A stretch of 63,463 nt of DNA from Vitrella brassicaformis CCMP3155 (GCA_001179505.1 CDMY01000503.1:1-63463); one strand, 5' to 3'. Counted from the stretch's first letter, positions 28,300 to 43,575 are shown. Translations and numbers: made by a program. Notes: generated by a model from the sequence alone, not told the origin.

Positions 28300-31200
28300 A
28301 ATTTCACTTTGTCCAGTTCATCCGTCACTGTCCAGCACTGTCTTCGAGGTTTGAGTCCTACAGGAGTCAGGGGAATCTGCCTCAACAGTTACAGCTGCAA
28401 CTGCACGAGACGAAAGCCCTCGCAAAGGAGAAGTACACACGGTAAGCCGTCTCGTCTGCCCATCCACACATTGTCAAGCCTCACACACGAGCGATTTGCA
28501 CCATCTGCTTCCTGCTTGAGTCTGCCTGCCGTCACAGTGTTGGAGCGAAGCGGCAATGACCTGCAAATTCTGTCGAACCGGATCTAAAGACGTCATACAT
28601 CTGCATATCATACATTTGTATCATGCGTGTGTGTGCAGCCATTGAATCGATGGATTTCTTTGAAGGGAAGGTGGCTGGTGAGGGCCGAGTCCGAGAGACA
28701 AGAGCTCTTGATAACGGTGAGCACTGCTCACTCGCTGGGCGCCAACAGCCATACAAGAATGCAGACAGACCTTTGTGTGCGCATCATGACACCCCTTTGT
28801 GTCACGTCATTCCCTCTAAGCGTTCACGGCAGCCAACCAACCACATCACCACGACGACCAGCAGCAGCAGCAGAAGGTACGAATAAATGATTCCACACAT
28901 CTCACCACACAGCCATCCGTTCGTATCGTCTCCTTATGACTTTCTGTCTGTCTGTCTGTCTGTCTCTCTGTCTCTCTGTGTGTGTATTCAGGCGACTGAC
29001 TGGCCGTGGGCTGGTCTGTTGGTGCACGCATTTTTGGGGTATGTCTCATTTGGATCGAATCATGATAGACTGTTCCCACCGACATGCCGCCCGATCCCGA
29101 CGGAAGATCCTTTGCCGGCTGGAGACGCTCGTGATTGCGGTAAGGAGGTCGGAGGGCGGGTGGGCGGGAGAGGAGGAGGGAGCGAAACCTAGTGCCTTGC
29201 GCTGGCGTTGTGCTTTCAGAAAGAGTTCAGGTCTGTAAGGAAAGAGCCGATGCTGCGGAAATATTCATCACCAGTGTCGGCTCACGGGCGGTGGTGGGAG
29301 AGGCTTTATCAAACGCAAACTGTCAGCGCCAAGGTAAATGTCAGCGGTCATCAGACACCCAGTAGACACGAGCCGGAGACACCAAGGAGACCCAGCCGGA
29401 AGACAAGCTCAAGAAGCCCATCGACCGTGACCGCAGAAGGAGAGGCGAGAAGCCCCTCCTGACCGACGACTTCAGGCGTCTCGTCGAGCCAATGAAGACA
29501 CCATTTGGGCCATCTGTTTGCTGTGTGCAGTGATGCTGAGTACCTGAATCTGGTCAAGTTCAAGAATATGACTGACGACCCCTACTTGGCCACGGCGAAC
29601 TCGAGGGCTGTTTCTTGCTGCTTATCATTGGTCTTGTCGGGCCCGTATCGAGGCGACCGAGGTACGCCTCATTCGGATCGAATTATGACAAACACATTAA
29701 GCTGACATTATGTGTTCAGAAGGAGTTCAACGACACGAAGAAACAGCCAATGCTCCGACGGCATTCTGCCCCACAGGTATGCACACGGTCACGTTATTTT
29801 CCCCCCTTGTCATGCCATCCCCTCGTCTTCTTGCCATTTCTAGGCCATCCTATCCAAGCGGTTAGTTGATCGGGCTCTGACTCTCTGTCGCATACACACT
29901 GTGTCTCTACGTGTTATGTGTGTCTCAGTTGGTGCTGACGGCACTGTCGAAATATCGCCGGCAGCCCGTTACTGCATCAAAGAAGCCGATATTATCGTGG
30001 CCCTCTACAAGGGCATCACTAAACTCCTCAAGGCCAAGGAAGACAAACTCGCCAAGAAGGCCACCATCGACGGCAGCATCGAGACGGGCACGCCACTCCT
30101 GGCCCAGCATACCTCTCGTCGGCGAAGTGGTGAGCTTCTTCCAGATTGAGAGGGTGGAGGGGGGAGGGGATAGGGCGGTCCACCTAGAGAGCAAGAAAAG
30201 GGCCACCCACAGTGCTGTCCCTTCATCTGCAAAGCCGTGGTGGGACGAACTATATCACACACAAACTGAGAGCAGCAAGGTAAAAGTCAGCGTCCATCGA
30301 TTGAAGATTCAGTCTTTGTTATTGATCTTGTCAGGCGCGTGTAGAGGAAACCAAGGCACGTCTCATTTGGAACAAGCCATGAGAAAAACATCACTTCTTG
30401 CGGTGGCCTTGTTTCTTCAGAAACAGTTCAAAGACGTGAAGAAAGCCCCGATGCTACGCCGACACTCCGCCTTGGACGTATGCACACTATCACATTGCTT
30501 TCCCTCACTGTCATACCACTCCCTCATCTTCTTTCCACTTTCAGGCCCTCCTCTCCAAGCGCATTGTCGAGCGGGCGTCAGAAAAGCGCCGCCATTCAGC
30601 GCCAGCAGTAAGCATTGGCACACGTTTTGTCGAGTATGGTCCCTCATGTGATATACTCGCTTCCAGGCCGTTGACCCCGACCACCACCAGGAGCAGCAGC
30701 AACAGCAGGAGCCCTTCCAGGCCGTTGACCCCGACCACCACCAGGAGCAGCAGCAGGAGCAGCAGCAGCAGGAGCAGCAGGAGCAGAACCGCAGGCAGCA
30801 GAAGGTACGGATAAATGACTCTACACATCTCACCACGCAGCCACGCTTTCGTACTGTCTCGTCGTGACTTTGTATCTGTCTGTCTGTCTGTCTGTGTCTG
30901 TCTGTGCGTATGTATTCAGCGCACGGGCAGTCCCTGGGTGGACGCCCTGCTGCTGGTGGGTTTCGTTTTCTCGCCCCAGTCGATTACATGTAAGGCCCCC
31001 CAGAGGTCGATAAAGGAGCTCAACAAGGCCAGCAGAGGTATGCACACTGTCATTTTCCCTGCTGTCGTTGAGGCTCCACTGTTGTTCAGGCAAGCGCCGC
31101 CACTTGTTGTTCAGGCTGGTGCTGTGGAGCGGCCACATGTGGCCGGCCCTCAAGGGGACTGCTTCAAGCCTTTCTTCAGCCGATCGCTACCTGCATTTTA

Positions 31201-32200
31201 TATCGTCGGCAGTGCATCTACTCCCATACGTTTGCCTTCTTCTCTTACTCCTGGAGCAGCTCACGTCCACACAGAAACAGCCCATGCTCCGCCGACACTC
31301 TGCTCCAAATGTATGCACACTATAACATTACTTTCCCCGATCTTCTTTCCACTTGCAGGCCATCTTGTCAAGGACGCTGGTCCAGCATGAGGTCGCAAAA
31401 CGCCGCCAGTCGGCCCCAGTGGTGAGCGTTGAGATACGTTCATAATCGAGAATGGTCCATGATATGATTTACTCCAGTTCCAGAGCAGACCAGTATAACC
31501 ACCAGCAGCAAGAGCAGCAAAAGCAGCAGACGGTATGAAAGAATGAAAGAAAAGGCGAGAATGACTGTATGTGTGGGAGGGGCTGTTGTGCATGTGCCCT
31601 GCAGCCGATCGCTACCTACTTTTTATATCGGTCGGCAGTGCATCCACCTGCAAAGCATGAAGAGTACCCCAAAGTTGATCTCTCAATTGAATCGATGGAT
31701 TTCCTTAAACGAAGTGGCTGGCGATGGCTCCGAGGGACAAGAGCTTGTCATAACGGTGAGCACTGCTCACTCGCTGGATGCCAACAGCGATGAAAGCACG
31801 CATGCAGACCCTTGAGTGCGCATCATGTCATCCCTTTGTGTGTCATGTCGTTCTCTCTAAGCGTTCGCGGCAGCGGTAAACAAGAAACAGCAGCCGCTGG
31901 ACCACCACCACCAGCAGCAGCAGCAGGAGGAAGAGCAGAAGGTACGAATGGACTCCACATATATCAACCACACAGCCATCCTTTCGTTGTGTCTCCTTGT
32001 CTGTAATCAGAACAAGGGCTGGCCGTGGGTGGACCCCATCCTACTCACATGCTGGCTGCTGACGCCCCCGGGCGTCGATGATCTTTTCATCGGCTTCTGC
32101 GGCGCCAGAAACTGCGATGTCGTGCGATGTCGTGCGATGTCGTGCGATGAGAAGTTGCTCCGATTCGATCGCAAGGGAGCTGAATGATTGGATCATGGCT
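28300..32200 (+). pseudogene. Tandem partial/degenerate paralogues of the 3' half of the gene at 41533-43575 (WWxxLY, ERIKAIK-type microexon, RRHSAP exons, poly-Q/H exon, PW..D..LL terminal exon)
   Basis: Exons and their flanking introns recur at ~28830-29075, 29220-29370, 29625-29870, 30235-30980, 31260-31545 and 31870-32110. Several copies have mutated splice sites, indels or stops. A 29930-31000 segment may be intact. Confidence 0.6.
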
Positions 32201-40100: not shown

Positions 40101-41003
40101 TGTGATGCACACGTATGCATACGTGTGGCTGACTGACTAGTGAGAGCCGCAGACAGAAACAGAGAGGAGAGCAGTGGGGGTGGGGCGGGGGGGACGCAGA
40201 GAGGAGAGCAAAGGGGGGAGAAAGGTTCCATGTGTGCATGCGTCTGTATCCGTCGATCGCTGCTGCGTCACTCTCTTACCAGCTGACTGCTGCCCCCTAC
40301 ACTCACCCTCACACTCGCTGCCGTGCATTCCATCCCATTGTCCATCGTCCGTCTACCCATCTACCCATCTACCCATCCATCCGCAGGTCTGCCTCTGCCC
40401 CTTCTTGCTACTTGCCACTTGCGTGTCCTCTGTCGCCCGTCTCGTGTCTCACAGACAAACACACACACACACACACCACGTCGCTGTCGGGGCGGGACTC
40501 GTCAGGGGCTTGGGAAGGGTGTATACGAGGGCATTGGGGCTTGTCTCAGCTCATTGCTGCCTGCATTTTATATCCGTCGGCTGTGCTTCTCGCTCGTGAC
40601 TGTCGGCCAGCGGGTGAATGGGCGAGTGGGTGGATGGATGTGTGTGAGCCAGGGACGAGGAAAGGCACGAATGGTGGCGTCCTGTGATGAACAAATGGGC
40701 GCATTGCAGACAAGAACAGAGCTGCTGTGTGTCTCCATTTCCTTCATCATTCAGGAGCTCTCATGGTTTAGAAGGAAAAGCATGCAGTAGATTGGGTGGC
40801 ATGCATGCGTAGACCGATGTATGCGAATTCGGATGTGAAACAGCAAGCACTGCTGCAGTCAGCCAACTGGTGTGGAGACAGCCTGAGGAACACATTCAGA
40901 CGTACGCCCCCAGGGACCCTCATTCCGAGTGGCACGTCCTCTTCCTTTTTCCCACTTTTCTCCCATCGCTCCCTTTCGCATCATCCCCTTTTCGTTGCCC
41001 CCT

Positions 41004-41550
41004 GAGGAGACTGCATCGCCTCCCTCCCGCACAACGTCGTTGAGGAGACTGCATCCCCTCCCTCCCCCCAACATCGTGAGGAGACTGCATCGCCTCCCTC
41101 CCGCACAACGTCGTTGAGGAGACTGCATCCCCTCCCTCCCCCCCAACATCGTGAGGAGACTGCATCCCCTCCCTCCCNNNNNNNNNNNNNNNNNNNNNNN
41201 NNNNNNNNNNNNNNNNNNNNNNNNNNNNNNNNNNNNNNNNNNNNNNNNNNNNNNNNNNNNNNNNNNNNNNNNNNNNNNNNNNNNNNNNNNNNNNNNNNNN
41301 NNNNNNNNNNNNNNNNNNNNNNNNNNNNNNNNNNNNNNNNNNNNNNNNNNNNNNNNNNNNNNNNNNNNNNNNNNNNNNNNNNNNNNNNNNNNNNNNNNNN
41401 NNNNNNNNNNNNNNNNNNNNNNNNNNNNNNNNNNNNNNNNNNNNNNNNNNNNNNNNNNNNNNNNNNNNNNNNNNNNNTCCCCTCCCTCCCCCCCAACGTC
41501 GTGAGAAGACTGCATCCCCTCCCTCCCCCCCGATGTCGTCGGAGACTCAG
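41004..41550 (+). repeat. Minisatellite of alternating 38-bp and 36/37-bp units (GAGGAGACTGCATC[G/C]CCTCCCTCCC...), interrupted by a 300-N gap (41178-41477)
   Basis: Units start at 41004, 41042, 41078, 41116 and 41153, with partial units after the gap. There are no unique spacers. Confidence 0.92.
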
Positions 41551-43575
41551 TCGAACTTGGTACTAAGCGGCGTCCGCGGCAGCGAGGGCCCCGGCCACCG
41601 GCCGCACAGCAACGATGGGGAAGTCAACATCCCCATCAGAACGGCCACCAACGAGAGGGGGACCGCCGTCGGACAACTGATGGACGTACGCCAGACAAAG
41701 ACACACAAACGGACGTGACACTCACACGAGGGTAATTGTCGGTTGATGGGGGTCCTTTGTTTCACCGCGTGTGTGTTCCCAGAAGGTAGGCCTCAGCAAG
41801 CGCAGCTCCCAGGAGATCCAAGAACGTCGCAAGGCCAACCTGCAACGAGCTGAAACACTCGTGGTATGCCTCCCTCCCCACCTCCAGAGCTCTTCGTCAG
41901 CCCCACCCACTCATTTGCGCCCACCCCTTTTTCTTCCTGCCTTCCTTCCTTCCTGTCGTCTGTCTGTCTGTCTGTCTGAAGAAGCTGCGCATTGAGGGCA
42001 TCAAGGACAAGAATGAGGGCAAGCTCGACGCAGCGGAGGAGCGTCGCAAAACGAGATTGCCAAGAAGGCTGAGCACGAGAAGAAGAAGGATGACAAGCGG
42101 CAGCAGGTCATCGAGCGGGCCAAGGAGCTCGAGAGACAGAAGCAGGAGGAGATAGAGAACAAGCAGGCCGGCAAGCTCGATGAAGCAGAGCAGCGGAGGA
42201 AGAAGCAGCTCGAGGACAGGGTCAAGCGCATGGCAGAGCTCGCTGCCACCGAGGAACACGTCCAACGCGCGGCTGAGATTCAGCAAAAGAAGGTCGAACA
42301 GATCGTTTCCAAGACGGCAGGTAAGTGGGTGGGCGAGTGAGTCAGAAAGTGACACGATCGTTACATCTGTGTGTCTGTCGGTGTGTGCTTCGCGCAGGGA
42401 AGCTGGATGCCGCCGAACAGCGCCGCCTGGACCTTCAGGCTCAAGTGGCCAAGCACCTGGCCGAGCTAGCCGACGCCGAGGCGCAGGTCAAGAAGGCAGA
42501 GGCAATGGAGCGGGCACGCAAGGAGGACATCATGGTGGGCACCCAGCGCAGAAAGCTGACCAACTGTGTGCACCCGTATCTCGTGTCTCGCTCTGTCTGT
42601 GAATCAATGTGCAGAAGAGACGGCTGGAGCACCTAGAGAAGGAGAAGGAGCGCATGCGAGAGCTTGGACTGACGGAGGAGATCGAGAAAATTGCCAAGGA
42701 GATCGAAGAGATGAAGGTAAAGGCCATGATCGTAAGCAAAACGCACTCTCGATCGTTGATGCCGTATCTGGCTCATGCTTTCTGCCCTCTGCCTTCCTAC
42801 CTGTTCGTCTGTGTGTGTCTGTGTGCGTGTGCAGGACAAGACCGACGGCAACCTGGATGCAGCCGAGTGGTGGGAGCGACTCTACGGGAAGAAGACAAAG
42901 TGCACCAAGGTAAATGTCAGCGGCCATCAGACCACCAGTAGCGTCTATCAATTTAAGATTCCGGCTTTGTATTGATCTTGTCAGGAACGTATAAAGGCCA
43001 TCAAGGTATGCCTCATTCGGATCGAATCACGATAGACACATTACTCCTTGAGCTGACCTTGTGTGTTCAGAAAGAGTTCAAGGGCACCAAGAAAGAGCCC
43101 ATGCTGCGAAGGCATTCTGCCCCACTGGTATGCACACTGCTTTTCCTCATCGTCCTGCCGCCCTCTCGTCTTCTTGCCACTTCTAGGCCATCATATTCGA
43201 GAGTCTAATCGAGCATGCGGTGCCGAGACGCCGCCACTCGGCCCCATCAGTAAGCACTGGCACACGTTATGGTCGAGTGTGGTACATCATGTGATTTACT
43301 CCCCTTCCAGGCTGCTGACCATGACCACCACCACCACCACCAGCAGCAGGAGCAGCAGGATCAGCAGCAGCAGCAGCACCAGCAGAGGCAGCACAAGCAG
43401 CAGAAGGTATGAATCCATACACATCGCGGAGAAGCGCACTCTCCTTCTCCGTTGTCCTTGGCAGCCGGGTGCCCCGTGGTTCGATGGCTTCCTCTTGTTC
43501 GCGTGGCTGATGTCCCCCCCAGGGGCCGATCTCTTTTGGATCGGCCTCTGGGAGGGACGCAACAGTGCATGCTGA
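41533..43575 (+). CDS. Stathmin-like repeat coiled-coil protein with RRHSAP motifs, His/Gln-rich exon and hydrophobic C-terminal tail; one apparent frameshift (42048-42051)
   Basis: About 11 exons with canonical GT-AG junctions. Three GKLD[AE]AE[EQ]RR repeats lie 51 and 50 aa apart after restoring one A. Ends PGAPWFDGFLLFAWLMSPPGADLFWIGLWEGRNSAC*. Confidence 0.7.

Follow-up and report, generated by a model that had tools for sequence, protein, structure and literature searches.

The repeats of an uncharacterised gene of Vitrella brassicaformis CCMP3155 have stathmin as their closest known family, and the match, as read from the sequence, is weak but specific and goes beyond an effect of composition. 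The encoded repeat protein may reasonably be considered as a possible binder of tubulin or microtubules that is neither animal nor fungal, a proposal that is plausible but unproven. It is not assigned to the stathmin family here, because it stays below the Pfam threshold, which is the defining test. An initial annotation of this DNA had proposed stathmin-like tubulin-binding repeats in the gene; the likeness itself holds up in the ranking of Pfam families, in a profile search of the PDB, in shuffle controls and in ESM features, whereas the scores remain sub-threshold and the signal weakens or is lost in longer sequence context.

The window analysed is the entire contig CDMY01000503.1 (assembly GCA_001179505.1), 63,463 nucleotides long. 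The repeat gene occupies positions 41533-43575 on the + strand in 11 exons, separated by canonical GT-AG introns of 60-120 nt whose 3' ends are rich in pyrimidines and in GT. The coding sequence rebuilt with exon 3 as publicly annotated is identical to the deposited product (P0001, 386 aa), which was deposited as unnamed and uncharacterised and without a Pfam domain. The features of the gene are as follows.

41533..41685, + strand: exon 1, 51 codons from the ATG, equal to P0001 residues 1-51
41783..41863, + strand: exon 2, 27 codons, carrying ..KRSSQEIQERRK..
41982..42320, + strand: exon 3 in our reading, in phase with exon 2, with a pyrimidine-rich acceptor; holds repeats 1 and 2
42018..42050, + strand: repeat 1 motif GKLDAAEERRK, frame 0 (KLDAAEERRK from 42021), absent from the deposited protein
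42048..42051, + strand: A4 run with one base apparently missing
42056..42320, + strand: exon 3 in the public annotation, with an atypical purine-rich acceptor; holds the remainder of repeat 1 and the entire repeat 2
42170..42320, + strand: repeat 2, GKLDEAEQRRKK..., 50 residues, P0001 117-166 (KLDEAEQRRK from 42173, frame 2)
42398..42534, + strand: exon 4, equal to repeat 3, KLDAAEQRRLDLQAQVAKHLAE..., P0001 167-212
42615..42716, + strand: exon 5, equal to a degenerate repeat 4 that aligns to positions 7-40 of repeat 2
42835..42909, + strand: exon 6, fifth motif GNLDAAEWWERL, with the Arg pair lost
42985-43005, 43071-43127, 43187-43249 and 43311-43406, + strand: exons 7-10 (tail), with RRHSAP twice and a His/Gln-rich stretch
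43465..43575, + strand: last exon, Trp/Phe-rich hydrophobic C-terminus ..PWFDGFLLFAWLMSPPGADLFWIGLW.., then the stop codon

Upstream of exon 1 lies an assembly gap of 300 N, from which it is separated by 56 nt.

The GKLDxAExRR motif occurs three times, at 42018, 42170 and 42397/42400. In the third copy KLDAAEQRRL runs from 42400, and the codon for the leading Gly is split by a phase-1 GT-AG intron (42321-42397). Repeats 2 and 3 are separated by 150 exonic nucleotides, exactly 50 codons, and repeats 1 and 2 by 152 nucleotides, which equal 51 codons only with one base added in the A4 run at 42048-42051; the motifs and both distances thus confirm the initial description of three repeats lying 51 and 50 residues apart once one A is restored. 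The motif is peculiar to this gene within the window: the pattern [KN]L[DE]xAE was found four times in all six frames of the 63 kb, each time inside the repeat gene. An ungapped alignment of repeats 2 and 3 extends over 45 residues and scores 75, compared to a shuffle mean of 33 ± 6 (z 7.1), a score that none of 2000 shuffles reached. The units are ~38% identical to each other, and in the self-similarity of P0001 residues 79-271 the lag of 50 is the sole outstanding one (z 5.9). A Gly stands ahead of every unit.

Exon 5 is recognisable as a fourth, degenerate unit when compared with repeat 2 (z 5.8) and begins 39 aa after repeat 3, while the fifth motif, GNLDAAEWWERL, lies 45 aa beyond the fourth unit. 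The period of 50-51 residues is therefore limited to repeats 1-3. Eight residues are identical among the motifs and only two or three of their codons are; because identical residues mostly use different codons, the repeats are old, and all of them, repeat 1 too, have been conserved as protein. The motifs are followed by RRKN in repeat 1 (only with the added base), RRKK in repeat 2 and RRLD in repeat 3, so that the serine of stathmin RRKS is indeed missing from the repeats, as initially reported, and the RRHS sites are found in the tail, as two copies of RRHSAP.

The status of repeat 1 depends on how the A-run at 42048-42051 is read, where the missing base could stem either from the assembly or from a genuine frameshift. 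Without an added base, frame 0, which encodes repeat 1, passes into an Arg/Ser-rich reading and ends at a TAG stop (42151-42153). The deposited product avoids this frame break by joining the end of exon 2 at 41863 to an acceptor at 42054-55, but thereby removes repeat 1. This acceptor (..gagcgtcgcaaaacgag up to the junction) is purine-rich (..cgcaaaacgag), unlike all other acceptors of the gene. The alternative acceptor at 41980-81 is preceded by a (ctgt)n tract, and from 41982 onwards 23 codons can be read without a stop, continue the phase of exon 2 and contain the best copy of the motif. The flanks of repeat 1 (IEGIKDKNEG-KLDAAE) and of the fifth motif (IEEMKDKTDG-NLDAAE) also agree, sharing 11 of 16 positions. 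Given the acceptor, the open phase, the quality of the motif, the matching flank and the diverged codons, we argue that repeat 1 probably is coding now or was so until very recently.

The repeat region is highly charged (43% E+K+R, or 48% with D included) and contains 12% Ala and 8% Gln. From the single sequence, AlphaFold2 predicts one helix of 174 residues (P0001 56-229, mean pLDDT 84) and a second helix at 232-263; the long helix runs through both Gly positions, with slight dips of pLDDT where the Gly-led units meet. The Fourier spectrum of hydrophobic positions has no dominant peak at 3.5/7, and a canonical coiled coil was rejected in the absence of this hydrophobic periodicity. P0001 is thus predicted to share with stathmin a long helix (at least ~90 residues) that is not a coiled coil. 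A Foldseek comparison of the AlphaFold model with the PDB yielded no useful information, which is not surprising for a bare helix. A TCP11 fusion was also rejected, as the Pfam search revealed no TCP11 domain.

A search with the Pfam Stathmin model (PF00836) had been proposed as the direct check; run on exon pieces, on the deposited P0001 and on parts of it, it gave a mixed outcome. Of 24,736 Pfam families, Stathmin scores highest with repeat 2 alone (16.0 bits, E 0.013), with repeat 3 alone (17.3 bits, E 0.0048; exon 4, E 0.011) and with repeats 2 and 3 together (P0001:110-215), where it matches in two stretches. This last score, 21.4 bits, is the best obtained and lies below the gathering cut-off of 24.7 bits; the piece was chosen by hand, and its E-value of 2.6e-4 does not by itself reach significance across a genome of ~25,000 proteins. 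Each single-repeat match covers profile positions 50-89, which correspond to the start of the first tubulin-binding repeat. When a three-row profile of the repeats was used to search 177,635 distinct PDB sequences, 20 of the 21 matches at E<=10 were stathmin or stathmin-4 (E 0.01-0.05), and the remaining one was a de novo designed repeat protein; myosin, tropomyosin and other charged helices were absent from these matches.

Direct comparisons point in the same direction. Repeat 3, the unit closest to stathmin, had initially been aligned to it with 13 of 23 positions matching; this agrees with the HMMER alignment to stathmin-4/RB3, where 15 of 32 residues are identical, 13 of them inside the span first chosen. 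The repeat 1 motif is identical to stathmin-4 in nine of ten residues. Shuffle controls against the RB3 segment gave z-scores of 7.2 for repeat 3, 4.5 for repeat 2 and 7.8 for the repeat 1 motif, and repeat 2, repeat 3 and RB3 fall into an ungapped three-way alignment with 11 identical positions. Among the ESM-Atlas feature neighbours of residues 117-216, 21 of the 30 family-bearing clusters carry PF00836, which by the calibration of this tool is only a lead.

The similarity has clear boundaries. It is confined to the opening ~34 of the ~50 residues in each unit, and in the shuffles against the RB3 segment no stathmin similarity was seen in the rest of repeat 1, in unit 4 or in the tail. The Stathmin score drops to 11.8-12.8 bits in the pieces 110-260 and 79-216, and this model found no match in P0001:50-250, in the 90-aa exon piece or in full-length P0001. 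In searches of the PDB, neither repeat 2 alone nor the 90-aa exon piece returned a stathmin, the 23-aa exon piece of repeat 1 had no matches, being too short a query, and repeat 3 alone scored no better with stathmin than with troponin I. Nor was a counterpart of the N-terminal capping region recognised: no Pfam alignment reaches profile positions 1-38, residues 1-78 are without a match, and exon 1 has no likeness to the stathmin N-terminal cap. Exon 2 has no significant similarity to the repeats; its string KRSSQEIQERRK is only loosely like the stathmin SxEEIQ lead-in, which a KRSS-QEIQ string also loosely recalls, and neither resemblance is significant. No significant grouping of conserved positions on a particular face of the helix was seen (p 0.28), and a single conserved helix face was therefore rejected.

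Relatives of the gene were sought widely. A phmmer search with the 90-aa exon piece over 1.84 billion (1.84e9) representative proteins found only P0001 itself. Word-index searches returned nothing for the 90-aa exon piece, only the query for P0001, and nothing at E<=10 for a two-row alignment that included the repeat 1 motif, while a motif scan of metagenomes gave 600 pattern matches, of which none was confirmed. Chromera, apicomplexans, dinoflagellates and ciliates had been proposed as places to look for orthologues; at the sensitivity of these searches none is detectable in these groups, nor is any present among the 1.84e9 representative proteins. As no homologue was found, no family profile could be built. 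The repeat gene may well be specific to the Vitrella lineage, with a product consisting mostly of one extended, highly charged alpha-helix, ~175-200 residues long and not of the coiled-coil type, a conclusion we draw tentatively.

Such a gene product could be nothing but a charged single helix or spacer, a rod, tether or tail scaffold that does not bind tubulin and that came to resemble stathmin by chance or convergence. We take this as a serious possibility, short of being probable. The protein is an orphan, its stathmin scores are all sub-threshold and depend on context, and single repeats match troponin I and a designed helix no worse than they match stathmin. The G-K-L-D-E-A-E string is a common helix-start motif, which also gave a match to an archaeal TRAX protein (phmmer, E 9e-4), the period is lost beyond repeat 3, and a look-elsewhere effect applies, many windows having been scanned by eye. 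However, a match driven by composition should draw in other charged helices, and stathmins were the only natural proteins that the repeat profile retrieved from the PDB. Likewise, two different repeats, matched in the same register, both have Stathmin as their first-ranked Pfam family, the ESM features agree independently, and a period of 50-51 residues, equal to the internal repeat of stathmin, would be an unlikely additional coincidence.

The same TRAX match suggests a different fold, in which the Gly-led ~50-residue units would be the antiparallel arms of a helical hairpin or bundle, TRAX/translin-like or TPR-like. Full-length P0001 matches Archaeoglobus fulgidus TRAX in the PDB over residues 90-247, and the Gly residues at unit boundaries, with their slight pLDDT dips, would fit such a fold. 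Nevertheless, the alignment depends on the same short AGK[LV][DE]EAEQ string, the Translin and TPR families are absent from the Pfam results even at E<=10, AlphaFold2 predicts a continuous helix across both Gly positions, and hydrophobic core periodicity is lacking. A TRAX-like bundle was rejected as a lone phmmer match with no family support, and we consider a folded bundle of any of these types highly improbable. Another alternative concerns the state of the gene and not the identity of the protein. If the loss of one base is real, the gene may be decaying, with repeat 1 dead and the product truncated or rescued by cryptic splicing. The deposited assembly itself contains the frame break, the annotation keeps the frame only through an atypical acceptor, and fragmentary copies of the tail exons upstream (29.2-32.1 kb), some with in-frame stops, suggest a family prone to turnover. 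Yet everything downstream of the break is open, the ten introns across the gene are canonical and their phases intact, the repeat 1 motif has been kept through synonymous changes, so that any break must be very recent, and homopolymer indels are common as assembly errors. A pseudogene therefore appears improbable to us.

As to function, our best reading is that of a divergent stathmin-like helix engaging one tubulin dimer per ~50-residue unit and either sequestering free tubulin or lying on a protofilament; it could be correct, and we put it forward with due reserve. The repeats with their spacing, their conservation as protein, the prediction of a long helix and the specific but sub-threshold likeness to stathmin are observed; the homology, any binding to tubulin and its stoichiometry, control by phosphorylation and association with membranes are inferred. 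Each unit begins with G-K-L-D-x-A-E-x-R-R and resembles the beginning of tubulin-binding repeat 1 in the stathmin-like domain, and the helix would run along head-to-tail tubulin heterodimers, whether free and curved or within a protofilament. With one unit of ~50 residues per 8-nm dimer, the annotated product would hold two dimers, and three if repeat 1 is coding; the three-dimer count put forward initially hinges on repair of the frame at 42048-42051. A fuller version, namely a true chromerid stathmin-like domain that is naturally multi-unit (at least three dimer-length repeats) and carries a C-terminal hydrophobic tail and tandem RRHSAP switches, seems to us rather unlikely.

The tail comprises, in this order, the RRHSAP sites, the His/Gln-rich stretch and the Trp/Phe-rich hydrophobic end. 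The two RRHSAP sites (P0001 291-296 and 312-317) are 21 residues apart, and each is on its own mini-exon. They fit the basophilic-kinase consensus RRxS and also the R-x-x-pS-x-P shape of 14-3-3 mode-1 sites; regulation of the protein through the tail might act via these two basophilic-kinase sites. The Trp/Phe-rich end, PWFDGFLLFAWLMSPPGADLFWIGLW, is conserved in the paralogous copies upstream and may associate with a membrane. Its best 19-residue Kyte-Doolittle mean is only 1.29, so that the C-terminus is not a clear transmembrane helix, and a clear transmembrane tail anchor was rejected on this account.

If the protein is a true stathmin-like domain, the origin of the family would be at least as old as the common ancestor of alveolates and opisthokonts, and the architecture would suggest a membrane-associated 8-nm "ruler" or a sequestering protein for cortical or flagellar microtubules in relatives of apicomplexan parasites. 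Apicomplexan cortical microtubules are unusually stable. Should the repeats be functional, the design of one helix with one repeat per tubulin dimer would be much older and more flexible in copy number, and a new class of microtubule regulators would be added in the lineage leading to apicomplexan parasites. If the homology is real, the protein would depart from known stathmins in its larger number of repeat units, in lacking a recognisable cap, in its different tail and in belonging to a new lineage. If the protein does not bind tubulin, it would be a useful warning that a charged helical repeat can closely mimic the signature of a family.

Stathmins are textbook tubulin-sequestering proteins. 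The stathmin-like domain is a long helix that lies along two head-to-tail tubulin dimers and carries an N-terminal hairpin cap (PMC11238091). Proteins dominated by this domain come almost exclusively from opisthokonts (Deng et al. 2024, PMC11238091), the known exceptions being two ciliate homologues and red-algal fusions of the stathmin-like domain (SLD) with TCP11, with none in Chlamydomonas (PMC11238091); the initial statement that stathmins are mainly described in animals thus needs a small correction, to mostly opisthokont plus these exceptions (PMC11238091). The literature that we surveyed contained no link of stathmin to chromerids, dinoflagellates or apicomplexans.

The Vitrella protein shares with stathmin/Op18 and RB3 (PF00836) a long uninterrupted helix, rich in E/K/R and not a coiled coil, and the repeat start KL(E/D)AAE(E/Q)RR.......K(H)LAE....E..V. 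The internal repeat of ~51 residues also has its equivalent, in repeats 2-3 (50) and, in the repaired frame, in repeats 1-2 (51). Unlike in stathmin/Op18 and RB3, no beta-hairpin cap and no sites of the Ser16/25/38/63 type were recognised in P0001, a Gly precedes each unit, and there are three to five units, whereas stathmin has two. The Vitrella protein also differs in its length of 386 aa, in its long C-terminal tail with phosphosites, a His/Gln stretch and a hydrophobic end, and in having no detectable orthologues.

With STMND1 and the membrane-targeted STMN2-4, the Vitrella protein may have a general plan in common, in which a helix that binds tubulin is joined to an element for membrane targeting and is regulated by phosphorylation. 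These proteins are lipidated at the N-terminus, through MGCGPSQ or palmitoyl-Cys (PMC11238091), whereas the sole hydrophobic element of the Vitrella protein is C-terminal. Its N-terminus reads MSSETQ and so lacks Gly2; a dual lipidation of the STMND1 type was rejected, as P0001 starts with MSSETQSN and not MGCGPSQ. A nuclear localisation signal of the STMND1 type, sought as a PLRKPPARLKKLKIKK-like string, was not found in P0001 (motif definitions from PMC11238091).

The homologues outside opisthokonts, namely Stylonychia A0A078AYX6, Oxytricha J9F0M3 and the Rhodosorus SLD-TCP11 fusions (PMC11238091), pass the Pfam/InterPro threshold, whereas the Vitrella protein, compared with them by description only, does not. 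As stathmin-like domains do occur in alveolates and red algae, a chromerid member would be phylogenetically plausible. The engineered stathmin-like domains offer another comparison: according to a passage of PMC7491153 that cites Mignot et al. 2012, the number of tubulin dimers bound ranges from one to four in domains built from one to four repeat units. One of them, PDB 4f61 ("Stathmin-like domain R4"), is among the PDB matches of both repeat 3 and the repeat profile. The R1-R4 domains are artificial, carry the RB3 N-terminal cap, and consist of exact repeats whose number sets the number of dimers, whereas the Vitrella repeats are diverged and would bind tubulin only by analogy. Both share the tandem ~50-residue unit on one helix, and the Vitrella protein, if functional, would represent in nature what the engineered scaffolds for one to four dimers were designed to be.

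The public gene model enters its third exon through a purine-rich, atypical acceptor (window 42054-42056), thereby skipping 74 nt that hold a well-conserved copy, repeat 1, of the stathmin-like KLDxAE unit. By this choice of acceptor the annotation appears to work around a one-base frame break in the A-run at 42048-42051. The 5' side of the gene carries a C-rich tandem repeat and an assembly gap:

41003-41177 and 41478-41532: tandem repeat of a 38-nt unit, GACTGCATCCCCTCCCTCCCC..., flanking the gap
41178-41477: assembly gap of 300 N

The repeat enters the gap, and its unit reappears beyond it and stops directly 5' of the start codon. The gene's real 5' end and promoter are therefore uncertain.

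The tail of the deposited 386-residue product (P0001) contains two RRHSAP sites, 21 residues apart, each forming the end of a mini-exon:

P0001 291-296, region of window 43113-43130: RRHSAP site 1
P0001 312-317, window 43232-43249: RRHSAP site 2

Both fit the RRxS kinase consensus, and the motif also has the R-x-x-S-x-P shape of 14-3-3 mode-1 sites. At least three additional copies of the tail exon set are found upstream, comprising the following elements, all within 29178-32112 on the + strand:

WWERLY-type exon
KEFxxTKKxPMLRRHSAP
..RRHSAP..
His/Gln-rich exon
hydrophobic end, G.PW.D..LL..WL..PPG.D.LF.IG..G.RN

These copies preserve the mini-exon structure of the tail, with conserved intron starts, lack KLDxAE repeats and in some cases contain in-frame stops. 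They look like a local gene family or exon array that is prone to turnover.

When the full protein was searched against PDB with phmmer, residues 90-247 matched Archaeoglobus TRAX (E 9e-4), a strength comparable to the stathmin matches of single repeats. The string AGK[LV][DE]EAEQ drives this match, which lacks support at the family level and is probably spurious. In ESM Atlas neighbour queries with P0001 52-250 and 117-216, the closest clusters (scores 0.90-0.92) were unnamed eukaryotic proteins of 57-196 residues, with recorded members among diatoms, green algae and land plants. In one cluster, whose commonest recorded phylum is Chlorophyta, Pfam Stathmin (PF00836) occurs in 14% of the members. 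The distribution of short stathmin-like proteins in algae may thus be wider than the literature indicates.
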